From Macrostomum lignano (Eukaryota), in NCBI GenBank assembly GCA_002269645.1, contig NIVC01001808.1:124001-188000 (forward strand): a stretch of 64,000 nt of DNA. Reading direction: 5' to 3'. Made by a program: the position numbers and the translations under genes. Shown in pieces: positions 5,085 to 55,278 of the stretch. The notes under the pieces are model-generated. The model was given only the letters and a program-made list of their open reading frames with translations, ran no database searches and was not told the origin of the DNA. Each line of letters begins with the position of its first letter. Position 1 is the first letter of the stretch.

Positions 5085-5915
5085 TGTTCGGTGTTCCGTA
5101 AGTTCTGAGCCTTCTTGCCCTAGCAAACGAACACAGTCACTCAGAGTCTTCAAAATTTTCACACTTTTCGACGTAGTCCCCTGTCAAGTCGACACACTTC
5201 TTCCAACGCAGCACGAGCTTGCGAAGGCCGTCATCGAAGAAGCTTCTTGGTGTAGTCTCCAGCCACGTGTTCAGTGCACGTTTCACCTCAGTCAGGCTGA
5301 TTTTGATTTGAGTGATTTTTTCATTGGTCAGAAGAGGTGATAGTCGCTGGGTGCCAAAAATCTGGTTTGGAAGCAGTTCCCAGTGCAGATTGCCAACTGT
5401 TCTCACAGTGTGCCTGGCAGTGTGAGGCCTGGCATTGTCGTGCTGAAGGAGTGGCCGAGAGTGCAGCTTTCCAGGCCGCTTTTCAGCAAGTTTTGGCGAA
5501 GCGGCCCTCTTAGCAGGATTGATTGTGCGGCCTGACCCGAGGAAATCAATGTGGATCACGCCTTCGGTGTCCCAAAAGACAGTGATCATTGTCTTCCCCG
5601 AAGATGGAGCAGAACGGGCCTTGACTAGGTGACCTTCTTCTGGCCAGCGCCACTCACGTGACTGCTCCTTGGTTTCTGGATTGTAAAGCCAGGTCTTCAG
5701 TGATAATGCGTTGCCAGAATGCCTCGCCGCGTACTTCTCAACCAGAGTCATCAGGTGCTTGTACGTGTCAGCCCGTTCATGTTTCTGGTGGATGCCCAAC
5801 AGTCTAGGAACCCATCGTAATGCAGAATTACGTGAACGCGTGCCACACCGATGCCACAGAAGTCAGCGATCTCGGGAACCGTGACTCGCTTGTCCTCCAT
5901 CACCAGCTTGAAATC
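5085..5915 (-). mobile_element. Decayed, 5'-truncated mariner (DD34D-type) transposase
   Basis: Motifs LVMEDKRVTVPEIA, WVPRLL (other frame), WLYNPETKEQSREW, GKTMITVFWDTEGVIHIDFL, QHDNARPHTA and RWKKCVDLTGDYVEK, with frameshifts. No complete TIR pair found. Confidence 0.85.
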
Positions 5916-6620: not shown

Positions 6621-8105
<1,485 letters not shown>

Positions 8106-8184
8106 GCTGCCGCTGACTTGGAATTGACTACATCTGGATTGTTTTTTGGGAAGATTTATCACCTTACTCAGTGGGATTGGCTGA

Positions 8185-9455
8185 GTGGAAGAGGGAGAAT
8201 TATCCCCGAACTCAATGGGATGGGGAAAAGTGGAAGAGGGAGATTTATCCCCGAACTCAATGGGATGGGGAAAAGTGGAAGAGGGAGATTTATCCCCGAA
8301 CTCAATGGGAAGGGGAAGAGTGGAAGAGGGAGATTTATCCCGAACTCAAAGGGAAGGGGAAAAGTGGAAGAGGGAGATTTATCCCCGAACTCAATGGGAA
8401 GGGGAAGAGTGGAAGAGGGAGATTTATCCCCGAACTCAATGGGAAGGGGAAGAGTGGAAGAGGGAGATTTATCCCGAACTCAATGGGAAGGGGAAGAGTG
8501 GAAGAGGGAGATTTATCCCGAACTCAATGGGAAGGGGAAAAGTGGAAGAGGGAGATTTATCCCCGAACTCAATGGGATGGGGAAAAGTGGAAGAGGGAGA
8601 TTTATCCCCGAACTCAATGGGAAGGGGAAGAGTGGAAGAGGGAGATTTATCCCCGAACTCAATGGGAAGGGGAAAAGTGGAAGAGGGAGATTTATCCCCG
8701 AACTCAATGGGATGGGGAAAAGTGGAAGAGGGAGATTTATCCCCGAACTCAATGGGAAGGGGAAGAGTGGAAGAGGGAGATTTATCCCCGAACTCAATGG
8801 GAAGGGGAAGAGTGGAAGAGGGAGATTTATCCCCGAACTCAATGGGATGGGGAAAAGTGGAAGAGGGAGATTTATCCCCGAACTCAATGGGAAGGGGAAG
8901 AGTGGAAGAGGGAGATTTATCCCCGAACTCAAAGGGAAGGGGAAAAGTGGAAGAGGGAGATTTATCCCCGAACTCAATGGGAAGGGGAAGAGTGGAAGAG
9001 GGAGATTTATCCCCGAACTCAATGGGAAGGGGAAGAGTGGAAGAGGGAGATTTATCCCCGAACTCAATGGGAAGGGAAGAGTGGAAGAGGGAGATTTATC
9101 CCCGAACTCAATGGGAAGGGGAAAAGTGGAAGAGGGAGATTTATCCCCGAACTCAATGGGATGGGGAAAAGTGGAAGAGGGAGATTTATCCCGAACTCAA
9201 TGGGAAGGGAAGAGTGGAAGAGGGAGATTTATCCCGAACTCAATGGGAAGGGGAAAAGTGGAAGAGGGAGATTTATCCCCGAACTCAATGGGATGGGGAA
9301 AAGTGGAAGAGGGAGATTTATCCCCGAACTCAATGGGAAGGGGAAGAGTGGAAGAGGGAGATTTATCCCCGAACTCAATGGGAAGGGGAAGAGTGGAAGA
9401 GGGAGATTTATCCCCGAACTCAATGGGATGGGGAAAAGTGGAAGAGGGAGATTTG
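8185..9455. repeat. 45-bp purine-rich minisatellite (AGTGGAAGAGGGAGATTTATCCCCGAACTCAATGGGA[A/T]GGGGAA[G/A])n, ~28 units
   Basis: Direct reading; lies between the convergent EFCAB14-like and scramblase genes. Confidence 0.95.
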
Positions 9456-10030
9456 TCTCCCAAATTAATGAGACCGGAAAGCAGAAAGGCAGCCAATGGA
9501 CAAGATTATCCCATCGCCCGATTTAGATGTTTAGTAGAGGGATTTTCTTAAACAGTGTCGATTCGTTCCTTAGTTTTGCAATTCATTACCTATCTGGAGT
9601 AGCAGGTAACTAAGACTTGCGATTGAACCATTGAACCGCCCTTTTATTGCCTCCGCCTACCTGTAGAATAACTTATTTTTGTTTGCTCAGTCCGAGACTA
9701 AATTTTTTACTTAAATAAGTAAACTTGCACGTACATCAATAGAAGTAGACTTTGAACTTTTCGTTTTTATGTCGAGAAAACCGATTATTATTATTATTAA
9801 GAAGCGTTTGTTCGGACAAAGATTCTTAGCTTAGATGCTAAGGTTCGATATGGATTGGCCGCTAAAATATCCGCTTATTGAGGCAAAAAACATCAGGGAT
9901 AAGGCAAGGAAACAAGCAGAAAGGAATATTCTTGTACTCGTAGTTACGCTCTTATATAAGTCAGCGCAAGGCAACTCTGAAGTCTGGTTCGGGTTGTAAG
10001 TCATCTTGGTTGGGTCTGCGCAACCCAACC

Positions 10031-10201
10031 TCAGTGCTGCGAGCGCCGGTTCTGGCCTTCAAAGAACATGAAGTCCTGCAATGATGTGGGTGCGATCTGT
10101 CTCACTGTCTGTCTGTCTGTCTGTCTGACTGTCTGACTGTCTGTCTGTCTGTCTGACTGTCTGACTGTCTGTCTGTCATGGAGCCTGTCTGTCTGTCTTA
10201 G

Positions 10202-10234
<33 letters not shown>

Positions 10235-10237
10235 TAG

Positions 10238-10297
<60 letters not shown>

Positions 10298-12263
10298 AGA
10301 GCTGCCATCTCACGATCAGAAAGCAGGCTGCCAGAACCACAGCTTTGATCTTGACGCTCAAATCTCGCGGAAAAGTGATGCCAAAGTTGTCAACGTCCGT
10401 GAAGTACTCCTGCAGCAGGTTGGTCCACTGCTTGGACACCCGGCCCACCTCCGTGCTGCCATCGTGCGACCTCAGCTGGAGTGAATTGTTGTTGACGAGG
10501 TGAAAATACAAAAGAATGGAATACCAAAAATGGAATATACCTGGTATCAATCAACGGAGTGATGCATATCAGTGCAGTGGAAAAAATAGAAACTGTGCAT
10601 AGATCGAGACGGAGTGAAAATTTGTATTGAGTGGGAAGGAGGGTAGAGAATAGAATGCAGAGAGGGTGAATATTTTGGCGGGTGTGAAAGTACCAATAAT
10701 GTGAATTATGTGAAGCTAATTGTTGCGAGAGACAAGAAGAGGCAGAAAATATCAATACGTACATGTATAGAGTGAAAATCTACCCCTAGATAGAAGAAGG
10801 CAGGCACAAAGTGAAGACAACCAACATATAGAAAATTCCAGGGCAAAATATTCAATAAAGCAAATTGGTCTTTCACACTCTGATACTCAAATAGCTGAAA
10901 GGGAACAGCTAGCAGCGCTTAACCGACGCACTGAGCGTTCCAGAAATAAGAGGAAAGCAGTTTTCACTTCAAAGCGGGGCCTTTCAAACCAACCCGATAG
11001 ATGCACACTGTACCAACCCGACAGATGCACACTGCACCAACCCGATAGATGCACACTGCACCAACCCGACAGATGCACACTGCACCAACCCGATAGATGC
11101 ACACTGCACCAACCCGATAGATGCACACTGCACCAAACCGATAGATGCACCAATCCGATAGATGCACCAACCCGATAGATGCACCAACCCGATAGATTCA
11201 CCAACCCGATAGATGTACCAACCCGATAGATCCACACTGCACCAAACCGATAGATGCACCAACCCGATAGATGCACACTGCACCAAACCGATAGATGCAC
11301 CAACCCGATAGATGCACCAACCCGATAGATTCACCAACCGATAGATGCACCAACCCGATAGATGTACCAAGCCGAAAGATGCACACTGCACCAACCCGAC
11401 AGATGCACCAACCCGATAGCTGCATACTGCATGTCATGTCAATCACACTACGTCATTGTTTCCTCAACGTGTTCTCTCCGATCAAGCAGCTTCTGACAAC
11501 TGCGTTCGCCAGTGCTGTGGACCGCAGCGCTCATTCGAGCTGTTTGTCGAGGACTACCAGGGCAACGAGGTGCTGCGCATCTCTAGGCCCTACAAGTGCG
11601 TCTGCTGTCACCAGGTCTGCTCCTGCGCCAACTGCTGCTTCGACGAAGTGTCAGTAGAGTCGCCGCCAGGCTGCTACATCGGACGGGTTGTGCAGGCCTA
11701 CGGCGGCTGCCGCCCGGTCTATCAAATCAAGGACGAGGCCGACGCTACTGTGCTGGTGGCGGAGGGGCCCATCTACACCAAGTGCTACTGCCCCGGAGAC
11801 GATATACCTTTCACTGTGAGCTGAGAAGTGGGTGGGGAGTGTAGTGTGCATCTATCGGGTTGGTGCAGTGTGCATCTATCGGGTTGGTGCAGTGTGCATC
11901 TATCGGGTTGGTGCAGTGTGCATCTATCGGGTTGGTGCATCTATCGGGTTGGTGCATCTATCGGTTTGGTGCAGTGTGCATCTGTCGGGTTCAAAGCTAC
12001 CAAATCAAATTAGGCTTGCCGCCGCGAAGCCTCAAGGAGCGCACTCACACTCTCTAGCGAAGAACACCTGCTGTCCAGTGGAGTTCTGCACGCTGTACCT
12101 GTTCTGCATCTCGAAGCCCGAAATGACTGCAAACAAAGGCGGCATGTTTCGGGTAAATGTTTGCTCATCAAAGCCAAAATTCAAGCCCAAAGGTCAGTCC
12201 GTTGGCGAATACGAACCCTCGAAAGTTTCCTTCTTCTGCTTGATGATGAGCTGGTCGAGCTGG
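10031..12263 (-). CDS. PLSCR: Phospholipid scramblase (PLSCR family) with one internal exon on the opposite strand
   Basis: Minus-strand exons: 12217..12263 (QLDQLIIKQKKETFE), 12049..12126 (VISGFEMQNRYSVQNSTGQQVFFARE), 10314..10475 (LRSHDGSTEVGRVSKQW...DVDNFGITFPRDLSVKIKAVVLAACFLI) and 10031..10075 (DFMFFEGQNRRSQH*). The missing middle exon is at +11490..11815. The 5'-most exon(s) are not resolved. Confidence 0.9.
10105..10295. repeat. (CTGT)n microsatellite in the last scramblase intron
   Basis: Direct reading. Confidence 0.9.
10988..11420 (+). repeat. Left arm of the inverted minisatellite pair: 24-bp AACCCGATAGATGCACACTGCACC and 17-bp AACCCGATAGATGCACC units
   Basis: Direct reading; reverse complement of the array at 11841-11991. 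Confidence 0.95.
11490..11815 (+). CDS. PLSCR: Inverted internal exon of the phospholipid scramblase gene
   Basis: AAGCAG|CT TCT GAC...CCT TTC ACT|GTGAGC. Encodes SDNCVRQCCGPQRSF...RISRPYKC...VSVESPPGCYIGRVVQ...EGP...DDIPFT. It starts in phase 1 and ends in phase 0, matching the minus-strand donor at 12049 (phase 1) and acceptor at 10475 (phase 0). Confidence 0.9.
11841..11991 (-). repeat. Right arm of the inverted minisatellite pair (GGTGCAGTGTGCATCTATCGGGTT)n
   Basis: Direct reading; same 24/17-bp units in the opposite orientation. Confidence 0.95.
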
Positions 12264-12955
12264 CTATTTCCTATTGAATCTCTCTTGTGAAGACATTCCA
12301 CCCTATTATATCGCTGCAGATTCAACTCCGCCTCACTGTGCGCAACGCTGGCCCAAGGAGATCTTATAGAATCTGGAGTAGCCACATCGGCTAACTAACT
12401 AAACTTCTACAGCTCATATTGGAGTCGCACTCCAGACTCTATTTATAGATGAAGATCGCCCTCGCCGAGCGGCCGGAGGGTCTGCTAGTCTTTTTTCACG
12501 ATACAGAGAATGCAGCACAGACAATGTTCTTTCAATTTGTTTTTTTCATCTCTCTCTCTCTCTCTCTCCATATCCATCTCTAAACCTTTGCACCTGGCTA
12601 CTCAAGAAAATAGCATTCGCTCAGCAGCTATTGTGTCTTTTGGAATCAACCGAGAGACGGAGGAGTGAAGGGGCGAGCAAAGAAGCTGCTCAACCAATTG
12701 AGGGTTGCCAGCCAGAGAAAAAATGCTTCTCTCCCTGCTGACGTCAAAGCTCAAATAGGCCAACGTGCCAAGCAAGCTGTTTAAGATATTTTCGCAACTA
12801 GCACGCTCTCTGCCAGTTCATTTTTCCCAAACTGACTGGTGCAAAAGTTGAATTTCGAACGTGTTGACCTTCTTTTACTTGGCTGATTCGGACACTGAAT
12901 CCGAATGGCACCCAACGGAGTCAGTGACCGAAGCGCTAGGCTCCCGCGCTTGATC

Positions 12956-15900
12956 ATGATCAGAATTCTGCTGCTAGTTGCTATGCAGGCCACTCTGTTC
13001 CCAGGTAAGAGTGCGCATCAAATTTCCGTATCCGCGTGCCTTTGTTGGTTGTTGATTTTTAACCAATTAATCTTAAGTAGATGCTTGCGAACGCACTACG
13101 CTCGTATTGTCGAGAAAAGTTGAATTTTCTTGATGGATGGATTTAATGGAGGAAGTTTTCGGAGCAAGTGCGACCCCCTTTTTTCTGATTCTGTCGGGGA
13201 TAATATGGATGGATTTAATGGGATTATGGAGGAGGTTAAAAAATTTGTCCCAAAAGCCCCCTCATGCCTTCTACTCAACAGAGTTCTGATGACTGCTCAC
13301 CAAAAGTTTTTAAGAAGCAAAACTTTTCCATCTTCGATGCTGCTTCAAGGACCACTAGAAGTTACCATTATATCATTAAATCAGTTAGAAACCCTGGTCT
13401 GCTAAATTGTTGCAAGCTTTGATGAATATAGTAACTGTATGTACATATAAGCATGACAAGTTTTAAACGATCTGCAAGGACTTGCGTGTAATGACATAAA
13501 TAAGTTTTACTTTAAATGTGCAGCTTTAACAGGTTAAAGCCTTAAAAATTACACACAAATCTATTTTGGAGCTAGTTCAGGTTTCCCAATCGAATCGAAT
13601 ATCAAATTGCCATCGATCTACTTTAAAAACAATATCGACACATTTCAGGTACTGCATTTGCCCAGCTAGCCTGGGATACATTCAGCCCAGCTCAGCAGAC
13701 GTACCCAACCGCCACCGTCACGATAGACGAAAACATGGCGGCTACCACAACGGTGCTGACAATAACCACCACAGGGGCCACGGGCACCGTGACCTATTCG
13801 ATTGCATCATCAACGACGGCTGCATTCACCATCGGGGCTTCCACAGGCGTGATTACGGTGAACGATGCGTCACTGCTTGACAGAGAAGCGATCTCCTTTA
13901 TTGACTTGGTTCTGCAGGCGGTAGACACGTCTCCAGCAACGGTCTCAACTACAGTTCGGATCGATCTGAAAGATGTGAACGAGATTGCTCCAACTTTTTC
14001 GTCGACTTCAACTTACAGCGTTACCATCAGCGAAAGTGAGTCGAATTGGCGCAAATTCTATAAAAATATTTGGATATGAGTTATACAAAGTAAACTTTGT
14101 CATTATTCCAGGTGCCACAGTGGGTACAACAATCCAAGCTCTAACGGTGACGGACACGGACAGCGCCGCGACAAACGTTGCGTGCACCATCAGCTCAGGT
14201 GACCCGGACGGCAAGTTCCAGTTTCGGTCGGACAATCAAACCATCGAGCTGAAGGCCGCCATCGAGCCGGACTCGCCGACAAACAACAGCTTAACTTACA
14301 CGCTCACCATCGTCTGCTATGACAATTTCAATGGTGTCTACAGCGGCGGCTCGCTCGCGTCGACTGGCACAGTGTCTGTCTCCGTGACGCCAGTGAATGA
14401 CAACTCACCGACCTGGGGAACGTTCACTCCGGCTCTTGCTACTCCAATTACTACGATTGATGAGAATCTGGCCAGTGGAACCATCTTTACCGCCGCTGCC
14501 TCGGATGTGGACTACGGAACTGACGGAGTCGTGACATTCAGCTTCTCGACAGTCAAGTTCAACACTGGAGCGGATGCCAGCGCTTTGTTCACGATTGGCT
14601 CCTCAAGTGGAGTAGTGTCCAGGACTGCAGCGACCACCCCGGCTCTCGACAGAGAGACATACAGCCACGTTGAGTTCGTTGTGCTAGCGATGGACAGCCC
14701 GACGGTTACAGCCGATCGGTTGACGATTACTCAGACAGTTCAAGTCAATCTCAAGGATGTAAACGAATTTACACCGGTATTCGACCCTTCAACTGGGCTA
14801 TATAACGTTTCTTTCTCAGAGAGTGAGTGCTCATACTAGTTAACTATTCTTTTGGAAAACGCAACTCCTATGCATTTTATAAGACCATTTACAAATACCG
14901 GTGGTAGTAAAGGACGTGACATTTCAAAGTCATGAAATCTATAATGCATTAGCAAGAATTGGCCCTCCCACATAGAATAAATCCAATATGCATATGATGA
15001 GTTTAATTGGGGATTGCTTTATGTACATGTACAAGGTTGTTCATTCTAGTTTTTTGTAGAATGCCAGGGACCTCTGTGATACAGGATACCATTTCATGTA
15101 TACCATAGATATCCATGATAAAAGGTATGCATAACATTAAATAAGATTTTACCACGCACAGCTATCATTATTTGTTTTCCATTTTCAAGTGATATTTGGA
15201 ATTCTTCTCAAAGGTGAGAAAATTGCCAATATTTTAAAGCGAAACACCTGGACCTTTAGATATGTTTTCCTTCATTAGAGGTGCTACTTCCACTTACTAA
15301 CCAGTGGTTTCCGATAATTTAATCGTCCTTAATTTATTGACGCACAATCGTTATTCCTCAGCCGCTCCCGCCGGGACTCTGGTCCTAAACGTATCCGTGA
15401 GCGACCCGGACTTCTCGCGCACGGCCATATCCTGCACAATCACATCCGGGAACACGCTGGATCGATTTCAAATGCGCGCGGATGGTACATCGTTGGAGCT
15501 GAAAACGCAGATCGAGCCGGATTCGCCCACCTCTGATCCTATAAACTATGTTCTTACCCTTTCCTGCGCGGATAATACTGCCGGTACTTACTCGGGCGGT
15601 CAGAAGTCCTCGACTGGAACGGTTACAGTTTGGGTCGAATATAACAATGACTACTCCCCAGTTTGGTCCACGTTTAGCCCGGCGTGGACATCGGCGACTA
15701 CTCCGATTTCTACCATTCTGGAGAATCTGGCCGTGAATCAGACTGTATTTACAGCCAGCGCAACAGACGACGACGCTGGAGACGATGGTCTAGTCGTCTA
15801 CAGCATCTCAGGCGCAGTCGCGGAGAATGGGTCCTCAGTGATGGAGGCTTTCGCTATTAACGGTTCCAGTGGGGCAGTCAGCATAGCTAATTCTACAGTG

Positions 15901-18900
15901 CTCGATCGCGAAGGCTACAGCTATGTTGATGTCACTGTAGAGGCTCGCGACTCGCCTGCATCTGGCACGACCTACACTATCACGCAGACAGTTCGAATCG
16001 GAATATCGGATTATAACGAATTCCCGCCGGCTTTCACGCCTTCAACTGGACTTTACACACCTGCGATACCAGAAAGTGAGTATAGCTACTGGTTTACAGA
16101 CAGGTTTTCAACATCAGCTCTGCATCAAAAAGGGGTTTGTAGCTTAGTTAAGAGGTTGTAGCCTAGTGAAGGGGTTGTAGCCTTGTAGTGAAGGGATTGT
16201 AGCCTAGTAGTGAAAGGGTTGTAGCTTAGTGAAGGGGTTGTAGCCTTGTAGTGAAGGGATTGTAGCCTAGTAGTGAAAGGGTTGTAGCCTAGTGAAGGGG
16301 TTCTAGCCTAGTGAAGGGGTTGTAGCCTAGTGAAGGGGTTGTAGCCTAGTAGTGGAGGGGTTGTAGCCTAGTGAAGGGTTTGTAGCCTAGTGAAGGGGTT
16401 GTAGCCTAGTGAAGGGGTTGTATCCTAGTGAAGGGGTTGTAGCCTAGTGAAGGGGTTGTATCCTAGTGAAGGGGTTGTAGCCTAGTGAAGTTGTAGTCTA
16501 GTGAAGGGGTTGTAGCCTAGTGAAGGGGTTGTATCCTAGTGAAGGGGTTGTAGCCTAGTGAAGTTGTAGTCTAGTGAAGGGGTTGTAGCCTTGTAGTGAA
16601 GGGATTGTAACCTATTAGTGAAAGGGTTGTAGCCTAGTGAAGGGGTTGTAGCCTAGTGAAGGGGTTGTAGCCTAGTGAAGGGGTTGTATCCTAGTGAAGG
16701 GGTTGTAGCCTAGTGAAGTTGTAGTCTAGTGAAAGGGTTGTAGCCTAGTGAATGGGTTGTAGCCTAGTGAAGGGGTTGTAGCCTAGTGAAGTTGTAGTCT
16801 AGTGAAGGGGTTGTAGCCTAGTGAAGGGGTTGTATCCTAGTGAAGGGGTTGTAGCCTATTAGTGAAAGGGTTGTAGCCTAGTGAAGGGGTTGTAGCCTAG
16901 TGAAGGGGTTGTAGCCTAGTGAAGGGGTTGTATCCTAGTGAAGGGGTTGTAGCCTAGTGAAGGGGTTGTAGCCTTGTAGTGAAGGGATTGTAACCTATTA
17001 GTGAAAGGGTTGTAGCCTAGTGAAGGGGTTGTAGCCTAGTGAAGGGGTTGTAGCCTAGTGATGGGGTTGTATCCTAGTGAAGGGGTCGTAGCCTAGTGAA
17101 GGGGTTGTATCCTAGTGAAGGGGTTGTAGCCTAGTGAATGGGTTGTAGCCTAGTGAAGGGGTTGTAGCCTAGTGAAGGGGTTGTAGCCTAGTGAAGGGGT
17201 TGTAGCCTGGTGAAGGGGTTGTAGCCTAGTGAAGGGGTTGTAGCCTAGTAGTGGAGGGGTTGTAGCCTAGTGAAGCTGTAGCCTAGTGAAGGGGTTGTAG
17301 CCTTGTAGTGAAGGGATTGTAACCTATTAGTGAAGGGGTTGTAGCCTAGTGAAGGGGTTGTATCCTAGTGAAGGGGTTGTAGCCTAGTGAAGTTGTAGCC
17401 TAGTGAAGAGATTGTAGCCTTGTGGTTAGAGCGTTGGACTCTCAGCTTGTAGGTCAGGGGTTCGATTCCCGATCCAACTGAAACAATTTGTGTCCTTGAG
17501 CAAGACACTTAACTCTGCATTGCTTCAGTTCACCCAGCTGTAAAATGGGTGCCAGCATTAGTTGAGGTAATTGAGGGTGGGTGTGGCGACCTCCCAGTCC
17601 TTGGACTGAACAGCTGTACGCAGCCTTCAGATGCGCCGCACAATAGCTGCGGCTGAGCTGTCGGTTGCACATCTGCTCATTAGGGCAGGTGTAATGTACA
17701 AGTACATATAGTATTATTCGTATATGTACCTGTGTGCGTAAATTAATTTGTATTTCTTTTAAACGTGTCCCAAATTCCAGCCACGACAGCGGGCACCGCA
17801 GTGCAGACTATTGTTGCCACGGACCCGGACTACTCGAATACAGCAGTTGTGTGCGCCATTGCCGCTGGTAACAGTCTGAATCGGTTTGCAATCAACACGG
17901 CCGATAAGAAGCTTGTAGAGACCGCCTCCGTCATTCAGCCGGACAAGCCCACCCTCGATCCCACCATCTACCTTCTAACCGTGCACTGCGCCGATATGAA
18001 CAACGGCACCCTGGGAACTCCAGTGCTGACATCGACAGCCTACATCACGGTCAATGTGACCCTCGTCAACGATTACGATCCGACAATCACCCTGAACTCG
18101 ACAACGATGGTGATCCCGGAAGACACCCCAGTATCCAGTTTCATTGTCAGTGTGACTGCGGACGACTTGGACTATGGAAATGACGGTACTTTCACCATAT
18201 CGCTGAGTCCAACAACACCGTTCGCGTATGTAGTACCATTATCTTGCTTCTACGTCGAAATCCTAAAATTTCTCCTTAGATTGAATTGAGTTATTACGCG
18301 TTCGATTAATTTCAGTTTAACCGGAGACCGAACAAAGCTTCTGCTGACAGAGGCTCTAGACAGGGAAACCAAGGATTCGTACGTGATTGAAATGAGGGCA
18401 CTGGATCAGGGGTCTCCAGCTAGGAGCAGCACCACAACGTTGACAGTCAGCATAACTGACGTCAATGATAACACACCTGTGTGCAGTCCCAACACGTACA
18501 ATGTCAGCGTCACCGCGGACAGTGCAGCCACCCTAGTGGCAAGCATTCCTTGCACCGATGCCGATCTGGGTGACAACCAGCTACTGGCCTATTCTTTTCT
18601 GTCGGGGGACACGCGAAATCTGACCCTTTCGTCTACCACTGGTAAGTCAGCGAGTTTTGCTTAAAAAAATATAACACAATCTATATTCAACTCATATTGA
18701 TAATTGGTCACATGACTTATCCAGGTGCCTTGACAACAACCTTTCTAACGTACGATTCCGCGGCGCCGTCCAAAACTCTGGTGATCACTGTGCGCGACAG
18801 CGCGACACCCGCCTCGGCGCAGCGCACAGCGACCGTCACAGTCACCGTGCACGTGCTGCCAAGAAACCTCGGCCCGCCAGTATGGGGAACATTCAACCCG

Positions 18901-21900
18901 CCGTGGATAAGTGCCACTACCGCAATCAACTCGGTATCGGAGAATGCCGACGAAGGATTCGCAGTGTTCACCGCGGTTGCTATTGACTACGACTCCGGGC
19001 CAGACGGTCAGGTGATCTACAGTCTGGCCTCAGTAACCGGTACGGACGGCACTACCAGCGTAGATCTCAGCTCCGTATTTAATATCTCCAGCAGCTCTGG
19101 CCAGGTGCAGGTCAAGACTAAAGGCATCCTTGACCGAGAGGCGACGCCAGCCTACACCTACATCAACTTCGTTGTACAGGCGCGAGATAATCCCACCACT
19201 GGGACTCCAAACAGCATCATCCAGACTGTGCGGGTTGACGTTACGGACTTCAATGAGTTGGACCCAACGTTCACTGGCGATCCATTCTCTGCGACGCTTG
19301 TCGAAGGTAATTGGATAAATACAATGCAAAAAATTACTGTATGAAGACAAAAGTATTCATTTGTGCTTTTATTAAAAAATGACTGAAATTTAATACCCGA
19401 AATTCAGATTCCGCCGCTGGAACTCTGGTGAAACAGATGGTTGTTTCGGATCCGGACAGCTCCAACACGATAATTACCTGCCAGATCACCAGTGGCAACG
19501 ATCTAAGCCTGTTCCGCACAAACTCCGCCAACTCAACAATCATCGAACTGAACACAGCCATCGATCCGGACAGGCCGAAAAATCATCCGCTTAGCTACCT
19601 GCTCATCGTCACGTGCTTGGATAATAATGGTGCTGGCAGTTACAGGACAGCAACAGCCAACCTCTCCGTAACCATCACTACAACCAACGATCACACTCCA
19701 GTCGTATCGATACCGATTGGCAGTAGCATTACCTTGCCTGAAACCCAGGCTATCGGTGACGTTGCTGATATTAGCGTTGTTGACCAAGACTACGGAACCG
19801 ACGGCACAGTTGCGTGCTCGATAGCGCCTACTGGCACTTTTGGGTAAGTTTTGACAGGGAAAATTTTTTTGACTTCAATTTCCACCCATGAGGATCAACT
19901 CCGAAGGCAGAGTGTACATGTCTGACAAATAGAAAGTCAAGACCGCTGTACACCCTGTGGGAGCGTGTGTATAATTGCGTGCCTGAGTACAGTACACTTG
20001 TGCTCAGGAGTCAGCGGAATGTGCAGGATCGCATCACCGCTGGTCTTGGGGCGATTTAGCCAAAGATGTTATGTCAGAGTTTCCATATATATACACACAT
20101 AGACGTATTGTATCACGCTTCGTATAATAAAAATAATTTAAAATTCATTAAACTATTGCAGGCTAACTGGCTGCACTAAGCTAACGCTCGTCTCAGGCTT
20201 GGACTATCCAACGGCCAGCTCCTACTCGCTAACTATCACGGCTGTCGATAGCGGGGCAACGCCGAGAACTGGCAGCGTCGTGGTGACAGTGACAGTGACC
20301 GACGTGAATCGCTACACGCCGTCCTGTTCGCCGGCGACTTACTCGGCTTCTGTATTGGAAACAGCAGCCAGCTTCCCAACGGCTCTGACGCCAGCCACAA
20401 CCATCACCTGCACAGATGGGGATGGCAACGGGGTTTACTATCAGCTAGTAGACAGTTCTGTACCTTTCTCCGTAAACAACTTGACAGGTGTCCTGTCCCT
20501 CAACGGGCCAGTTGACTACGATAGCGCAGTACAAACGTATACGATACTTATTCGAGCGGTTGATCCGGCTGACTCATCCAAATCGGGTCTGGCTACAGCA
20601 ACTGTGGCTGTGACTGCCGCTAACGAGTTCACGCCGACGTTTCCTACGGCCACTGTCACGCTGTCGGTGTATGAGACCGTAGCCAGCTCCACGACGATAA
20701 CGACATTCGCGGCGACCGATGCTGACTACTCACCGCATGCGATCACCAGCTACGCGATCGCATCAGGCAACACTGGCGGGATGTTTGCAATCAGTAACGC
20801 TGGTGTCATCACGGTGGCTTCAGGCATGACGATCGATTACGAAGCTGTCTCCGGAAGTTCGCCCTATGTTTTGCAGATTGTGGCAACAGATGGTGGAGGC
20901 CTAACAGGTACAGGGACGATTAGTATCGTTATCCTGGACTCGAACGACCTGCCTCCAGTCTTTAGCCCAGCAAACTACTCCGCCAGTGTCCCCGAGGGCT
21001 CGGCTGCAGGTACCACCGTCACCACGGTAACCGCCACTGACGGCGACACGGCGCTGAACAATAACAACAAGATATTGTACTCCAAGCTAACTGGAGACTC
21101 GGCGGGCTATTTCAGTGTCAATTCTACCAATGGATTAATATTAACAACTGGTAATATACTGAACTACGACACCGTAACGCAAGTGGTCTTCACGGTGAGC
21201 ATAACTATTTTTAATTTTTATAATTTCCGACGATACATTGTATTCATAAAGATTAGATGTTAAATTATAAACCATCAGACATACAGTTTATGTAGCTATT
21301 ATACAAATAATCCAGTAGATTTATCTGAGGCCATATATTACTTATGTTAGAAACGATTCTACAGTAAGAATCGAGTTTAGGTATTCTACAGAAAAGTGGT
21401 AAAAAAATCGAATTACAGGTCACAGCAGTGGATGGCAACGGTGCTGGACCACACACTGCCACAACTACAGTCACAGTCGCTGTTACGGATGTAAATTTAC
21501 ACGCACCAAGCTGCAGTCCAAGCACAGTCACGGTGAATAACATCCGTGAAGACGTTACAGTTGGTACTGCTCTCACCAGTCTGACTTCGCCGGTTGTGAT
21601 TTGCACTGATGGCGATGCCAAAGACACCCTGACCTACACAATGAGTGCCAGTGCATCTGACAGCCACTTTGCAGTCAATCCGACCAGCGGCGCAATCACT
21701 GTGTCCACTGCTCTGGACTTTGAAACCGCTAGAATCCATCAGTTTGAAGTAGTAGTCACTGACAGCGCTACTCCGGCCAAGTCGGTCAGTATGGCGGTGA
21801 CCATCAATGTACTTGATGTTAACGAATTCAGCCCAACCTGCACAGTGCCAACAACCGCGTCCATGAATGAGGCTCAAGCAGTTGGTACCGCTGCCTACTC

Positions 21901-24900
21901 TGCAACTAGTTGCAGCGACTCAGACGGCACTGCAACAACGCTACAGTTCGCTCTAGTGCCCGGCACCCCGTTTCAAGTCAGCTCATCCGGAGCCGTCACT
22001 GCCAGCAGCGCACTGGATTATGATCCAGCCAGTGCCACCACCAGCTACTCAGTGCGTCTGATTGTGTCAGACAATGCACCCACGATCAGCTCTCTCAGGT
22101 CCAGTACTTACACAACCGTTGTCTCGGTGACACCTGTTAATGAGTTTGCACCGGTGCTCACCTACACGGCTCTCACTGCTAGTCTAGCTGAGGATTCGGG
22201 AACAGGGACAGCACTAGCTTTGAAAACTATCGGTGGTACGAGCGTCTCAATGGCGGCAACTGACGCCGACCGAGGCCTGAATCACGCCACCCTGACCTGG
22301 TCCATTGTTGGTGGAAATGACGCCGGTAAATTTTCGATCAATTCGGCTTCGGGAGCGCTACAAACAGCCGCGGCACTGGACAGAGAGACAGCCGCCAGCT
22401 ACACGCTTCTGGTTAGCGTAACAGATGGAGGCGGCCTCTCTTCCACTGCTAACTGCACCGTGGCCGTCTCAGTGACTGACATCAATGATAACACGCCAGT
22501 TTGCAATCCAGCTTCTCAGACCATCACCCTGTATGAGGGCGAAGCGGCCAAACAGCTGGTAGACTTCGGTGCATCGGGCAGAGTTACCGACGCTGACTCT
22601 GGAGTTAACGCGCAGCTGACCTTCAGTCTAAACAATGCGGGTAAGAAGAGCACTGTTTGATATTATTGCCATAATTATCCGCTATCATAATGAGTGAACT
22701 AACAAAAGAAACTCCACAATCTGATTTCAGCTGCTCTGAGCCCAGACTTCCAGCTTAGTGGCACTCGTCTCAGTAGCGTGCGCAGCTTCAGTTCGTCCGA
22801 TACCCTATCAAACACGCTTTTAGTTGTAGCTACAGATGGTGGCAGCTCCGCTCGATCAGCCACTTGCTCTGTGACGGTTAACATAGCCGTCACAGCTAGG
22901 CCGCCTACATTTACAGTTGCAAACAGCGCTGTCACAGTGTCCGAGAGCTCTTCAGTGGGCACTCAGGTATTTCAATTTGTTCCCAACTTGGGCACTGGTG
23001 GAACAGGACCGCTTACAATGTCACTTGTCGACTTCTCTCCATCTGCGAATTCGAATCTGTTTGCGTTCGATGCCTCAACTGGCCGAGTTTCAGTAAACCA
23101 GGCGTTGGACTATGACTCAAGCTCAACAAGGGTCCCTTTGTCCTGATGGTAAAAGTAACCGACGCCACACCTCTAACTGCGTCGGGCACTCTGACCATCA
23201 GCCTGACTGACGTCAACGACAATGATCCACAGTTTGGATCTACTGTGGAGTTCACAAAAACTATAGACGAAAATGTTGGTTCCGCCTTTTTGACCCAAAC
23301 CATCACCTGGACTGATGCTGATTCCGGCTTAAGCGGAATTGCAAACTGCTCGATTGTGGGGCAGTCCACGCCGGCGATTTTCACCATCGACGCGACCAAC
23401 TGTCAGCTGAAGACGACTGCCAATCCCGACCGAGAGAACTGCAGCCTGCACAATATCACTATCGCGCTTACCGACATGGGTACCCCGCAGCGCACAACTC
23501 AAAGAAGCTTTTTCATCACGATTGCTGATCAAAACGACAACACTCCAGCTTTTGCTTCGGCCTCTTTTGCCGCCTCTGTAGCGGAGGAGTCAGCGCCGTC
23601 TACCACTGTTGGCACCTATGCTGCAACCGATGCAGACGCCGGTGTAAACGCCCAGCTAACGTACTCCCTCACGTCTCAGGACGGCATTTCGGACGCGTCT
23701 AAGTTTACAGTATCTAGTGCCGGGGCTGTGACAACGGCGGCCACGCTCGACCGCGAACAGTTCGGCGTCTATCGCCTGTTGCTGCTTGCAAAAGATGGCG
23801 GGTCGCCACCACGCACGGGTACCACAACCCTTGTAATCACCGTTAATGATATCAACGAACACACGCCGTTGGTAAGACTTTTAAGTAGTACTCGTATATT
23901 TAAAAAATAACTGAATCTTTCGTTTGATCCAAATTAATTTTAAATGTATTGGACTGCTTAAAAAACAAATTTACTTACAACTCTTTCTATTGCAGTTCTC
24001 AGGCCTACCCGACACGGTGAAACTGGTGGAGAACTCCACGGCGGGCACGCTAGTGTACACCATCGCCGCTACTGACCGAGACTCAACCTATGGCGCACTC
24101 ACGTACAGCATCATTGACGGCAATAATAGCACCGCGTTCGCTATCGATGCCAGCACTGGCCAAGTGACCGTGGCCTCGCCTGTAACTCTCAATCGGGAGG
24201 CCATACCAGTTTACCAGCTTGTGGTGCAGGTTCAGGACAACGGTTCGCCAGCTAAATCGGCCACGTCAACTCTCACCGTGTCCGTGATGGATGTCAACGA
24301 GTTTGCACCTAGTTTTGCGTCCCCGACTGTTAGTTTCTCGGTAAGACGATTTATTGCCTTCATTCCTGTGTAGTACACATGTCTCTAAAAGACTCAACTT
24401 GACTATTTTGTTTTTCCTATCGTTCAGATTGCCGAAAACTCCCCGGTGGGCAGCACTCTAGGAACTGTAACTGCCACAGACAGTGACGGCCCGAGCCAGA
24501 CAGTAAGCTATGCTGTTGCTGCCACTTTAGTGGGCACGGCCGGCCACTTTAGCGTCAACAGCGTCACTGGAGTGGTATACGTCAATCAGGCGGCTCTCGA
24601 CCGAGAGACTCTGGCAACCTACGTGCTGCAAATTGCCGCCTACGACAATGGAGTTCCTTCTCTGACGTCTTCTCCGCTGTTGAATGTAACCATCTCTATC
24701 ACGGACACCAACGACAACGATCCCGTCTTCAGTGCAGCCTACTACAACGCCTCAGTTAGTGAGAGTCTAGCTATTGGCTCGGTGGTGCTGACCGTGTCAG
24801 CGACGGATCAAGACGCCGGCAGCAACGCTGCGTTGACCTACTCGCTGCATTCGTCAGCAACGACAGCGAGTACATTTTTCTCGATCAATTCTGCCACAGG

Positions 24901-26276
24901 ACAGCTAAGCACTATTGCAGCTCTGGACTACGAGACTAACACGGACTTTCTGTAAGCCAGTGCACATCTTTGTTACTCTACTTTGTTTTGAGTTAATTCC
25001 AATACATAATCCAACAGTACCATGCACTAAAAACCGTAACAACCGAATTGAATCACGCAGCTTCACCGTCATGGTCAAAGACGCTGGAACGTCGCCTCAG
25101 CGCAGCTCCACAGCCAGCGTCTGGGTGTCTCTGAACAACGTGAACGAGCACCGGCCAGTGTTTGCCTCGACATTCTACAACTGCGAGGTGCCGTACAACG
25201 ACGATACGCGAGCGATTCTGGCGACGCTGACCGCCACAGACGCCGACGCGGGGACTTTCGGTACGATAACGTCGTACAGTTGGAATAGTACAAACATCTA
25301 CTTGTATCTGGGCGCAACTAGCGGTCAAGTGATTCGAAACTCCGATCAAGTCATGGAGCGCAACAAAAAGTACATCCAGTACGCGATGGCCACCGACGGC
25401 GGAGGCCTAGTGTCCACGCAAAATGCCACAGTTCGCTGCGACTCCTTCCCGCCTGAGGACTACGTGGTGCTAATCTACACAGAGTTGTCAGAGAGCAGCT
25501 TCAACATGATGCTGACCAGCCTCACCGCCAGTCTGAACTCCACGCTGCAGGATGTCCACCCGGGCAGCTCAGTGAGGTTCTGGAAAAAGCAGAAGTCTGG
25601 AATCTACTGGGTTGGCTACTTCTATGCTCTAAGCAGCCTTAGCACTGATAGCATCTCCAATATTGGCCAGGACAAAGAATTCCTGACCCAGTCTCAACTG
25701 TTGGACAAGTGGCGACTTAAGTCAGACGGGACACCTACCAGCGTCCTCACGAGCAGCAGCTTCAGCAACTACCGGGTCAACAAAGTGGAGCCGTATCCAG
25801 ACTCCGACAGTGACGCGTCAACAAACTGGTTGGATACGTGGTGGGGCAAACTCTGCCTGGCTCTGGGGGCCGCCGCCGGCGTTGCTTTGATTGGCGCCCT
25901 TGTCTACGGCTTGGTTAACGCATGCGGCGGCGCCGGGGCTGGCGCGTCTGCCGCTGCGCCGACGGCTGCAGCAGCCGGCCAGACCACGGTAGCTCCGGCG
26001 GCTGGAGTCGGCGGCGGCAAAGCGACCAGTCAGCTGGCCCGGCAGCCCATGAACCAGCGGCACCTCCTGCCCAATTCGCAGCAGCAGCCGAAGCCGCCGC
26101 AACGATTCCAAGACACGCCGAGGCCGGACTTTAACGACAAGCAACAACAACAGCAGCAGCAGCAGCAGAAGCAGAACAACTCCAATAACAGGCAGAATCA
26201 GAACCAATCCAGGCAGAGTAACAACGATTCTGGCCGGGGCAGCGCCGCATCCGACGTTGTGATCTTTGAGCTTTGA
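12956..26276 (+). CDS. Giant single-pass cadherin-repeat protein (~3040 aa, ~25 EC repeats, membrane-adjacent domain, TM, short Q/N-rich tail); one frameshift near 23130
   Basis: 14 exons: 12956..13004, 13649..14035, 14112..14822, 15362..16075, 17781..18225, 18316..18641, 18725..19306, 19408..19843, 20162..21194, 21419..22640, 22731..23871, 23996..24340, 24428..24951, 25061..26276. All are GT-AG with consistent phases. Has a signal peptide, repeated xE..AxDxD..LDRE/DYE..DxND/NExxPxF motifs, TM segment WWGKLCLALGAAAGVALIGALVYGLV, and ends DVVIFEL*. Confidence 0.9.
16130..17405 (+). repeat. 19-bp minisatellite (AAGGGGTTGTAGCCTAGTG)n derived from the 5' end of SINE family A
   Basis: About 65 units in cadherin intron 4, running directly into the SINE at 17406. 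The unit matches the first ~19 nt of the SINE copy at 27659 (minus strand: AAGGGGGTTGTAGCCTAGTGGTCAGAGCG). Confidence 0.9.
17406..17695 (+). mobile_element. tRNA-derived CORE-type SINE, family A
   Basis: A box TAGCCTTGTGGTTAGAGC and B box GGTTCGATTCC. GTGTCCTTGAGCAAGACACTTAAC...CTTCAGTTCACCCAGCTGTAAAATGGG resembles the CORE domain. Two more copies are in the window. Confidence 0.8.
19885..20065 (+). mobile_element. Headless fragment of SINE family B in cadherin intron 8
   Basis: Shares several blocks with 3740-3915. Confidence 0.5.
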
Positions 26277-32330: not shown

Positions 32331-47168
<14,838 letters not shown>

Positions 47169-48242: not shown

Positions 48243-50298
48243 TACAAAGGTTATGTCATAAATTTGCTGACAAACTTACATAGTATCTGTTTCTTTTGTA
48301 CTTTGGGACAGAATTTTTGTTACAGACTAAGGCTTTATCAATCTTATTGTCTATGGAAAATCTTTCCTCTGGCTTTTGAGATAAGGCAGAAATTGAGTGG
48401 CATTCAAACCACCCTTCTAGCCAGTATGGAGAAAAGTGAAGCTACCAAGCGCACTGCCATTTGGTCATTGTGGAAGCAGCAGAAGAAGCAGGCTAATATT
48501 TACCGCGAGCGGCTGCAAATCTTTGGTGAAGATGCACCTTCGAAACAAACTGTGTCAAAGTGGGTGCAGCCCTTTGAGGATGGCTGGGAGACAGTTTATG
48601 ATGCTCCCTGCACAGGTTCACTGCAGTCATCCACTTTCAGTGACAATATCTAGCGTGTGCAGCATGCCCTGAACAATGATTATGGAGCAACCCTGAGGTA
48701 GTTAAAGGACTTGTTGGCAATACCAATGAAGAACATTCATCACATCATCTCTGACCATCTGCATATGACACGAGTTGTTGCACAATGGGTCCCTAAACTG
48801 CTGACTCCTGTCCAACTGCAAGAAAGGGTCCAGATATGCCGCCACCTGCTCAATGCTAGTGATAGATCAAAATTTGATTTTGATTTCGATATTCCAAATT
48901 TTGAAACTAATTTTGCATTGCAATAACTTTGATTTTGATTTCAAATTTCGACACCATTCATCAAAAATCATTTCAAAATATTGGTTATATTTTAACAATT
49001 TAGACATTGATGATCATGCTACACGATTAAGAAAATCTATAGGAAGTGAAAGGAAGCGCAGTTCAAAGACTCAGTGGGGAGGTGAGAATCACCTTTTCTA
49101 TAAGAAAAGATTGTGCAGGGCACACACTGTTCCAGGCCTTGTGCTGCACCCACCTCAACCTCCACAAGCCCACTGGCTGAACTCATTGGCGTGGATTTTA
49201 ATTGGCTAAAGACTTAAAGCCTTAATGAAATGGATATAGGCTACTCATATCTAGATCTTCAGCTTAAACAGTGGTGAAGTATAATACAACTTCTACTGTA
49301 TTTTTATGTACGAGTTTATAATACATAATACACTAGCATTTTCTATTTTGTATTTTTAAAGTAAGTTAAATCTAAAGTATTCTGGTTTAAACATATTAAA
49401 GATACTTTTTATAAAACATATAAGCTCTACAGAGGCAAGGTGTTAACCTTTTTGCATGATTAGCGAAAAAGTAAAAATTTGTTAAGCTCTAAAAATTTCA
49501 ATTTTGATTTCAATTTTGATTCTAAGGAACCAAAAATTTTGTTTTCGATTTTGATTTGAAAAATAATTTTGATCCATCATTACTCAATGCCTATCAAAAC
49601 AAGCCCAACTTTCTTGGCCGCCTGGTGACTAATAATGAAATGTGGTTTCACTTCTATGAACTGGAAACGAAACAGCAGAGCAGCATCTGGAAGGCTACTC
49701 ACGAACTCCCACTGGTCAAGGCCAAGGTGGTGCAGTCAGCAGGTAAGCACATGGCCACGGTGTTCTGGGACAGAGAAGGCATCTTGTTAATCGAGTGGCT
49801 ACCTGAAGGCAGAACCATCAATGCCCAGTACTACTATGAAATATTGGAACGGCTGCATGAGAAGATCAAGAGTGAGTGCCGAGAAAGGATCACCAGGGGC
49901 ACTGTGCTGCAGCAGGACAACGCTAGGCTGCATACTTGCAATGCAACTATAGATGTCATCAGGAGACTAGGCTTCGAGTTGCTGCCTTACCCTGCCTATT
50001 CTCCTAAACTGGCCCCTAGTGACTATTGGCTGTTCCTTAAAATGAAAGAGCCTCTTTGTGGCCATTGCTATGGAAGCCTTTTTGCATCCAGCTTGGCTAT
50101 CAGCCAGTAGGTATGTGGGACCCCCACAGAATTCTTCACCTAGGGCATCAGCAAGCTCCCAGAGAGATGGCACAAATGTGTGCAGCTTGGGGATGACTAT
50201 GTTGAGAAGTGCAATGTTGACAATTAGCTGTTCTTTATTTTGTTTCTTGTTTGTTTGCAGTTTGTAGTTTTTAGTGAATTTATGACACAACCCTCGTA
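48243..50298 (+). mobile_element. Full-length decayed mariner transposon (TA-flanked)
   Basis: TIRs CAAAGGTTATGTCATAAATTT (48245-65) and the reverse complement of CGAGGGTTGTGTCATAAATTC (50276-96), 17/21 match, TA on both sides. The transposase (WVPKLL, MATVFWD, QDNAR, YSPKLAPSDYWLF, RWHKCV..DYVEK) has in-frame stops and an internal insertion. Confidence 0.9.
48857..49582. mobile_element. Non-autonomous hAT-type MITE nested in the mariner
   Basis: 8-bp TSD CTCAATGC (48849-56, 49583-90). 18-bp TIRs TAGTGATAGATCAAAATT / TAATGATGGATCAAAATT (16/18). Removing it restores HLLNAYQNKPNFLGRLVT. Confidence 0.85.
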
Positions 50299-50566: not shown

Positions 50567-51419
50567 AAAGCATTGACATTTCAGTAATTCTCTCCGAGAG
50601 TCATTATAGCACTACAGCATTATAGCGATTCCCTGCAAGCCTCGACATCGTAGGGATTCCCAAATGAATCTCTTAACTTCGACATGAAGCTTCTTTTATT
50701 TTTTACATTACACTTTATCTATCAGCGATCCTTCCCGTGAAGAGCCAACAAATAATGAAAACATTTTTCAATAAACTACATCATCTACATGTAGCTTGTG
50801 AATTTAGCCTTGATATCTCGGTTATTCCCCCGTGAGCCTTGACATCTCAGCTATTCCCCCCGTAAGCCTTGACATGTTAGCGATGCCCCCCATAAACCTT
50901 GATATCTGAAAAATCCCCTGTTAATCTTGAAACCCGCTAAAATCTAACCCTCAACCCAAACCTGACCTAAACCTAACTTTAACCCAACCTAAAGCCTTGA
51001 ATCTCAGCAATTCTTCTCCCCTAAGCCTTGACATTTTAGTGATTCCTTTTTTAAGAATCACAGCACCATAGCGATTCCCTCCAAGCCTTGGCATCGTAGC
51101 AATTCCCAAATGAATCTTTTAACTTTGACATAATGACTCTTCTTTTATGTACACATAGTGCTTCTTCTCTTTTTTACATGACTCTTCTTCTATCAGCGCC
51201 CCCTCCCCCGTAGCGAGCCAACAAAGAATGTAATAAAAAATTGAGTAAACTACATGTACTTTGAAGTAGCTTCTGACGTTTGCTATTTTGCTTCTCTGGC
51301 ATCTCAGAAACCCCCTCCCCATAATCTCAGTTATTCTCCGTGAGCCTTGACATCTTAGTAATTCTCCCCAGCACAGCACAATAGCTTCTTTTAATTTTTA
51401 CATGACACTTCTTTCATGT

Positions 51420-54549: not shown

Positions 54550-55278
54550 TCATGTCTGACATGACGCTTCTTTTATTCTACCATGATGCTTCTTAACATT
54601 TTAAATGACACTTTCATTACTTTTTAAATGAGGCTTCTATGATTTTTACATGACGCGTCTATGATTTTTTACATGACGCTTCTATGATTTTTTACATGAC
54701 GCTTCTATGATTTTTTACATGACGCTTCTATGATTGTTTACATGACGCTTCCATGATTTTTATATGACGCTTCTACGATTTTTTACATGGCGCTTCTATG
54801 ATTGTTTACATGACGCTTCTATGATTTTTAAATGAGGCTTCTATGATTTTTTAAATGACACTTCTATGATTGTTTACATGATGCTTCTATGATTGTTTAC
54901 ATGACGCTTCTATGATTTTTTACATGACGCTTCTACGATTGTTTGCATGACGCTTCTATGATTTTTTACATGACGCTTCTATGATTGTTTACATGACGCT
55001 TCTATGATTTTTTAAATGACGCTTCTATGATTTTTATATAACGCTTCTACAATTTTTTACATGTCGCTTCTATGATTGTTTACATGATGCTTCTATGATT
55101 TTTTAAATGATGCTTCTATGATTGTTTACATGACGCTTCTACGATTCTTTACATGACGCTTCTATGATTGTTTACATGACGCTTCTATGATTTTTTAAAT
55201 GACACTTCTATGATTGTTTACATGACGCTTCTATGATTTTTTACATGACGCTTCTACGATTTTTACATGACGCTTCTT
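54550..55278. repeat. Same 22-23-bp satellite, short array
   Basis: Direct reading. Confidence 0.95.

Follow-up and report, generated by a model that had tools for sequence, protein, structure and literature searches.

A scramblase exon in opposite orientation between inverted minisatellite arrays in a gene copy of Macrostomum lignano

A scramblase gene of Macrostomum lignano, located in a 64,000-nucleotide stretch of contig NIVC01001808.1 (assembly GCA_002269645.1, positions 124,001 to 188,000 of the forward strand; hereafter the window, to which coordinates refer unless another locus is named), raises the question of how one internal exon can come to lie on the strand opposite to the rest of its gene, and whether such an arrangement has a function. 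Exon 3 (11490-11815, plus strand) is antisense to exons 1, 2, 4 and 5, which are all on the minus strand, and is bracketed by arrays of the same minisatellite in opposite orientations. An initial annotation of this DNA had offered three possibilities, namely a recombinase-free ON/OFF switch, a fixed null allele and a misassembly. The explanation preferred here, with a probability of roughly 0.6, is a real, fixed and young inversion caused by recombination between pre-existing arrays in a redundant, damaged homeolog. That the window copy carries a real inversion in one version or another is quite likely.

The window copy and its missing 5' end

Exon 3 is 326 nt long. A pyrimidine-rich tract and an AG precede it on the plus strand, with TGTTCTCTCCGATCAAGCAG directly 5' and GTGAGC directly 3', and its AG/GT splice sites are intact, with phase 1 at entry and phase 0 at exit. 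The C-terminal residues of exon 2 are ..FFARE plus one base, i.e. this exon ends in phase 1. When exons 1 to 5 are spliced colinearly, they form a single open frame that runs to the stop codon. The Pfam Scramblase profile (PF03803) matches the colinear product of exons 1 to 4 in one continuous alignment (E=7e-60); with exon 5 and the upstream read-through included, the match covers profile positions 19-220 of 221 (E=5.7e-65). Omission of exon 3 shifts the frame, and a stop codon follows 28 codons on. The exons do not lie in order on one strand as they do in the paralogs, exon 3 being opposite. Only one scramblase copy was found in the 64-kb window by a tblastn scan, and a second, plus-strand scramblase gene to which exon 3 might belong was therefore rejected. 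No sequence-related solved structure was found.

These results agree with the initial annotation as to the plus-strand position of the exon among minus-strand scramblase exons, its phases and splice sites, the inverted 24/17-bp minisatellite on either side and the frameshift upon skipping. The left array was found to end at 11431, not 11420, and exon 2 begins at 12126; the truncation of exon 1, described below, had been overlooked. The features of the locus, in the order in which the minus strand is read, are the following:

12266..12907, minus strand: DNA upstream of the exon 1 remnant, with no homology to a scramblase N-terminus, ending at the start of a plus-strand cadherin gene
12217..12265, minus strand: what is left of exon 1, SQLDQLIIKQKKETFE and one further base; the GT donor follows at 12216
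12049..12126, minus strand: exon 2, VISGFEMQNRYSVQNSTGQQVFFARE plus T, with acceptor TTTGCAG and donor GTGAGT
11992..12048, minus strand: first 57 nt of the intron that follows exon 2, unique sequence in gene orientation
11839..11991, minus strand: right minisatellite array, the reverse complement of the left array
11432..11838, plus strand: unique inverted segment, comprising exon 3 with 58 nt of intron before it, including the polypyrimidine tract, and 23 nt after it
11490..11815, plus strand: exon 3, 2 nt plus 108 codons (SDNCVRQCCG...DDIPFT)
10988..11431, plus strand: left minisatellite array of 24-mers and 17-mers
10476..10987, minus strand: rest of the intron that precedes exon 4, unique sequence in gene orientation
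10314..10475, minus strand: exon 4 (LRSHDG...AACFLI), 54 codons, phase 0 on entry and exit, with donor GTGAGA
10076..10313, minus strand: last intron, nearly all a (TCTG)n microsatellite as read on the plus strand
10031..10075, minus strand: exon 5, DFMFFEGQNRRSQH followed by the stop codon, with acceptor TTGCAG

Both unique flanks of the inverted segment retain the gene orientation, which indicates a clean inversion rather than a palindromic chimera. The idea that the last exon is missing was rejected, as it was located (DFMFFE...) at 10075-10031.

The second lesion concerns the 5' coding end. In BLASTP comparisons with P0002, a gene model from the same species that is introduced below, identity stops abruptly at the Ser of SQLDQL, at 12265. 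Upstream of this point the frame stays open for 43 codons, without an ATG and without significant similarity. The 51 missing N-terminal codons include the start codon and the conserved CPxGLEYL, and neither the exon with this motif nor the first 51 codons were found in six frames of the 64 kb, either by tblastn with E values up to 100 or by motif scans; a location of the N-terminal exon elsewhere in the window was accordingly rejected. The Pfam domain match starts at profile position 19 in the window copy and at position 7 in P0002, a loss of about 12 positions. A complete open reading frame (ORF), with a start codon and an N-terminal CPxGLEYL, is thus lacking in the window copy, and since the 51 codons are absent, re-flipping exon 3 would restore no gene at this locus. 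The upstream DNA (12266..12907) is unique sequence and resembles, at the DNA level, none of the upstream regions of the paralogs. A PW...E.L pattern that appeared in the upstream read-through in a MAFFT alignment was dismissed as chance, as BLASTP gives it no support. The neighboring gene on that side is a large, divergently oriented, multi-exon cadherin gene with many cadherin domains (12908-26276, plus strand), about 640 bp from the truncated scramblase end.

Colinear copies and paralogs

Exon 3 of the window is 100% identical to UniRef entry A0A1I8GLT5, a phospholipid scramblase of Macrostomum lignano. Two gene models from an earlier M. lignano assembly, P0001 (160 aa) and P0002 (1449 aa; UPI0007A2C6F8), belong to the same 90% cluster. 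Both read QQVFFARESSDNCVRQCCG, a colinear FFARE-SSDNC join in one reading frame, and P0002 additionally reads DDIPFTLRSHDG, the colinear DDIPFT-LRSHDG join. From these joins it follows that exon 3 is colinear in the DNA underlying the two models.

P0002 maps along the minus strand of the window from 12265 down to 52, and the two loci therefore share gene order. In the scramblase part, 203 of 205 residues are identical between P0002 and the window, among them all 108 of exon 3; the differences are T/N and R/Q, the private residues of the window copy being the Thr in QNSTGQQ and the Arg in FPRDLS. Identity in the neighboring stretches is only 89-93%. About 745 reverse-transcriptase-like residues of P0002 are without a counterpart in the window, and P0002 starts with the 51 N-terminal residues that are absent there, a stretch (MDSNRIQP...APWMERP...PGCPRGLEYL) that is clearly homologous to the N-termini of the paralogs. 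Taken together, the insert, the divergent neighboring stretches and the 51 extra residues indicate that P0002 describes another copy of the locus. M. lignano is a neopolyploid with three subgenomes that are about 98% identical; in the DV1 line they differ by single-nucleotide polymorphisms at 1.1% in coding sequence and 2.2% overall, and the differences between subgenomes are mostly insertions and deletions, with some possible inversions (PMC10733133). The divergence between P0002 and the window is of the level and kind reported between these subgenomes. P0002 itself is a fused model, in which the scramblase (with exon 5 skipped) is joined to probably non-coding stretches, the reverse-transcriptase-like insert and a downstream gene at 52-2947.

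The initial annotation had pointed to homeologous and paralogous copies as the comparison to make. Five annotated paralogs, at six loci (L001-L006) of the Mlig_3_7 assembly, were compared with the window. At all six loci exons 1-4 are colinear by tblastn, exon 5 being matched at three. Exon 1 is unbroken from the ATG through CPxGLEYL..QLDQ..KKExFE at L006 and at L001-L003, the loci nearest in sequence to the window copy, and is split at another point in L004 and L005. The boundaries of exon 3 (SSD...DDIPFx) are the same in the paralogs as in the window, and the inverted segment is 73% identical in DNA to exon 3 of three paralog loci.

Among these paralogs, L004 (NIVC01000227.1, about 23.0-36.0 kb, BOX15_Mlig008661g1) has the same architecture in un-flipped form. 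A 23-bp minisatellite private to that locus is present in opposite orientations in introns 2 and 4 (L004:4407-6156 and 7370-8904), with arms of up to 615 nt at 92-93% complementarity, and exons 3 and 4, which lie between the arrays, are not flipped; the gene is annotated as intact. The proposed inverted-array substrate therefore exists in a colinear state. At L001 (NIVC01000092.1, BOX15_Mlig009235g1), the homologous exon 3 is flanked by two arrays of a 30-bp minisatellite family that run in the same direction (9342-10807 and 11432-11776; alignment score 188 direct versus 9 inverted). The inverted pair at L004 and the direct pair at L001 suggest that locus-private arrays are re-seeded nearby in either orientation. 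Overall, the same locus-private minisatellite occupies two introns in three of the seven scramblase loci examined, and in two of these it is inverted around exons.

The two homeologous loci of paralog P0003, L002 and L003, are 96-99% identical and run colinearly for about 18 kb, with no inversion; they differ by a 3.9-kb intron insertion and by array lengths. Small inversions are thus not a common background in this comparison. The insertion (L002:8466-12382, intron 2) contains minisatellites and, on the opposite strand, a gene for ribosomal protein L18A. Downstream of BOX15_Mlig008661g1, and in tandem with it, L004 also contains a second, more distantly related scramblase paralog (L004:11333-12895).

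The bracketing arrays and the origin of the inversion

The array of 24-mers and 17-mers at 10988-11431 and its reverse complement at 11839-11991 were delimited with TRF. The array unit has 27 matches in the window, every one within these two arrays, compared to 0.01 expected by chance, and it was detected neither elsewhere in the window nor at six other loci (about 160 kb of genome). The inverted arms reach 101 nt at 98% complementarity and are about 0.4-0.7 kb apart, with an alignment score between the arrays of 117 inverted versus 25 direct. Similar sequences in opposite orientations are therefore present on both sides of the segment, as expected for an inversion mediated by inverted repeats. 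The left array (444 nt) consists of six 24-mers followed by a mixture of 17- and 24-mers in which a block of about 108 nt is duplicated, and the right array (153 nt), on the minus strand and from its outer end inwards, consists of units of 21, 17, 17, 24, 24, 24 and 24 nt, so that unit order differs as well as length. All four array ends are at the same unit phase, and the outer flanks share CTTT[C/G]AA. This shared phase is better explained by two complete arrays than by a random cut through one, although as evidence it is thin. The splitting of one array by a simple two-break inversion was considered less likely because the ends share a phase, though phase continuity by itself cannot separate the models.

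The window copy is best read as one of several near-identical homeologous scramblase copies, with two structural lesions, the loss of the 5' part of exon 1 with the start codon and the probable inversion of a 0.4-1 kb segment with exon 3. In the proposed mechanism, homologous recombination between the inverted arrays would flip the 407-nt unique segment and leave the arrays themselves inverted. Such a flip would require no dedicated recombinase and would be reversible in principle. The outcome would be a non-functional copy, in which skipping of exon 3 leads to a frameshift and no start codon remains, and its loss would be tolerated because at least one other copy keeps exon 3 colinear. The anatomy, the species, the colinear copy, the truncation of exon 1 and the un-flipped inverted arrays at L004 are established by the sequences, whereas it is inferred that the inversion is real rather than an assembly error, that the arrays preceded it and that the copy is not expressed as a protein. 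Of the three possibilities first offered, the fixed null allele comes closest to what was observed, with the refinement that the allele would be one of several near-identical homeologs, at least one of which is colinear.

Several points weigh against this explanation. The orientation of exon 3 is read from one assembly, and the 5' truncation is deduced from protein homology and the exon structure of the paralogs. In Mlig_3_7, no annotated protein more than 70% identical was found, by a search on shared words that may be incomplete. Apart from the two lesions the coding sequence is pristine, with 2 of 205 residues changed, none of the 108 in exon 3, and all splice sites intact; both lesions would then have to be very recent, and the same picture would be expected from a misassembly. 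The probably non-coding neighboring stretches differ at about 10% of translated positions, a rate at which about 20 changes would be expected in 205 codons. Finally, the inversion itself could have duplicated one array.

The first alternative to be weighed is that exon 3 is truly colinear and that the assembler or polisher misoriented the segment that these arrays enclose. Orientation errors are well known to arise at inverted repeats, the genome is redundant, hard to assemble and partly chimeric between subgenomes (PMC5730564, PMC10733133), the undamaged state of exon 3 and of all splice sites is as if nothing had happened, and a colinear version is known from the models of another assembly. 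However, the assemblies of M. lignano were made from PacBio reads (PMC5730564), and the window is without Ns, with arrays of 1.3-1.8 kb assembled through, which indicates that the long reads used were able to span the structure of about 1 kb with its arms of 150-440 nt. Neither repeats longer than the reads nor a gap or join at the boundaries is apparent, an indirect argument that is drawn from the gap-free arrays. The colinear models also depart from the window in sequence and in three further structural respects, and hence belong to another locus, and the 5' truncation next to the inversion is in unique sequence, in which a false join would hardly be expected. An artefact is accordingly possible but unlikely. 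The same can be said of a real inversion that generated its own inverted repeats, in which a single array was duplicated through staggered breaks or template switching. The four ends in phase and the shared outer flanks, which suggest two complete copies of one array, are in keeping with such an event, as is the confinement of the unit to this place in about 160 kb of genome; the truncation of exon 1 is only 274 bp from the right boundary, and one complex event is possible. Against it, the arrays differ in length (444 versus 153 nt) and in unit order even though the event must be young, and the inverted arrays without a flip at L004 and the direct pair at L001 indicate re-seeding without inversion.

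A segment that toggles at an appreciable rate without any function, being polymorphic in the line or mosaic in the body, is doubtful. Inversions flanked by inverted repeats toggle recurrently in other genomes, the arms of the window arrays are a plausible substrate for recombination at their length and spacing, and the lesion is young; yet a single orientation is seen at the locus, the arms are short, and L004, with far longer arms, was assembled un-flipped. A more general version, in which minisatellites are frequently re-seeded one or two kilobases away in either orientation and pairs that end up inverted around exons flip them appreciably in germline or soma, providing a recombinase-free means to silence or toggle redundant homeologs after genome duplication, with the window as the flipped state and L004 as the un-flipped state, is improbable. 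The functional ON/OFF switch put forward in the initial annotation found no support and is very improbable. Its phases, splice sites and bracketing inverted repeats are what a reversible cassette needs, and a similar bracket exists in L004, but the 'ON' state would still be without a start codon, the 51 N-terminal codons and CPxGLEYL, as homology stops at 12265 and these codons are absent from both strands of the 64 kb. Nothing points to regulation or to a second orientation, the genome has other intact copies along with at least five paralogs, and array pairs of one minisatellite family also occur in direct orientation, so that the architecture looks incidental. Least probable of all is the joining of exon 3 to the minus-strand exons by trans-splicing of mRNAs, as in Drosophila mod(mdg4). 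Spliced-leader trans-splicing is common in the species (38.8% of genes; PMC5730564) and the exon keeps perfect splice sites, but an internal exon would have to be trans-spliced twice, the transcripts of the two strands would be complementary throughout, the 5' coding end is gone in any case, and a colinear DNA copy accounts for the colinear protein models.

The initial annotation had also suggested that, with the exon in its native orientation, the arms could pair in the pre-mRNA and promote exon skipping or the formation of circular RNA. Pairing was borne out by RNA folding of the minus-strand transcript, which predicts a near-perfect stem of about 150 bp with the antisense exon looped out; skipping and circular RNA need a sense exon, and here it is antisense. 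The stem has no coding consequence in the window copy, whereas in a colinear copy or in L004 it could cause exon skipping, circular RNA or double-stranded RNA effects.

Repeats of other kinds are abundant in the window, which contains more than 15 distinct minisatellite arrays, several of them longer than 1 kb. Two of these, at 39908-40470 and 444-1307, have units (CCAAACCGATAATCCCACATC and GGGTCATAGATGGAATC) that resemble the unit of the bracketing arrays (CCAACCCGATAGATGCA), and the three may constitute a loosely related family. One 23-bp minisatellite forms two arrays in direct orientation that are separated by 1.4 kb (51397-53226 and 54599-55277). A palindrome-like inverted repeat of about 1.16 kb (55972-57134) has arms of about 430-600 nt, which are 92-97% complementary, around a centre of 137 nt; it is not built from tandem repeats and could be a foldback element or a miniature inverted-repeat transposable element. 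Among six long ORFs that were scanned, no DNA-inverting recombinase was detected; the domains seen were a retrotransposon integrase, mariner transposase fragments and cadherin domains. The retrotransposon is of the Ty3/gypsy type, with an intact 1332-aa ORF (35715-39713, minus strand) that contains protease, reverse transcriptase, RNase H and integrase, and the mariner-type fragments are at 5137-5799 (minus strand) and 49556-50110 (plus strand). With its tandem arrays, retrotransposon and mariner fragments, the window fits the published picture of the M. lignano genome, about 15% of which is simple or tandem repeats and which has 180 Mb of duplicated blocks at 95% identity or more (PMC5730564).

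Relation to known systems and meaning for the gene family

The structure of the window works like inversions at inverted repeats combined with gene loss after duplication, and not like a programmed switch. Inversions by non-allelic homologous recombination between inverted repeats include those of F8 intron 22, the polymorphic FLNA-EMD inversion and the flip-flop isomers of plastid genomes. As in the window, a segment is bounded by similar inverted repeats, no recombinase is involved, the change is reversible in principle, and a gene is disrupted if exons lie inside. In contrast to these cases, the arms in the window are only 0.15-0.44 kb long and surround a 0.4-kb spacer with a single exon, the repeats are locus-private minisatellite arrays rather than segmental duplications, and the colinear orientation is known from another copy of the locus. 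Inversions with flanking inverted duplications are known from staggered breaks in Drosophila and from human dupINVdup and INVdup variants attributed to template switching. Such inversions resemble the window structure, in which one sequence recurs in inverted form at either end of the segment, another lesion is close by and the array ends are in phase; they are unlike it in that the arms of the window differ threefold in length and also in unit order. The loss of gene copies after whole-genome duplication provides the closest setting, a neopolyploid in which one copy looks intact and one is structurally broken, with the distinction that the lesion here is the inversion of an exon rather than a point mutation or deletion, and that the remaining coding sequence is undecayed.

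Other systems share less with the window. In the bacterial and phage switches (fim, Hin/Gin and shufflons), the orientation of a segment between inverted repeats decides expression, but these have short specific sites, a site-specific recombinase nearby and two functional states, whereas the window has long degenerate arrays and neither orientation is a complete gene, the start codon and 51 N-terminal codons being absent even with exon 3 restored. Foldback-type transposons likewise have inverted arms of tandem short units with abrupt outer ends, as seen here, but the interior of the window structure is an in-phase host exon and no other copy of the unit occurs in about 160 kb; as the unit is not dispersed, a foldback transposon was rejected, and a possible target-site duplication (CAA) is too short to count. 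Pairs of Alu elements around exons that give rise to circular RNA are comparable to the colinear state and to L004 (exons 3-4), in which the arms would pair in the pre-mRNA, and not to the window itself, where the exon is antisense and no back-splicing is possible.

The finding opens no new kind of gene regulation, and in annotation it calls for the window copy either to be labelled a pseudogene or to be examined for an assembly error. Provided that the inversion is real, a recently duplicated genome has here disabled a redundant copy cleanly, through the structural flip of one exon rather than through point mutations, which would mean that locus-private minisatellites can supply the inverted repeats. 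Paired locus-private minisatellites in neighboring introns recur in this gene family, and are a potential source of exon flips that could be measured.

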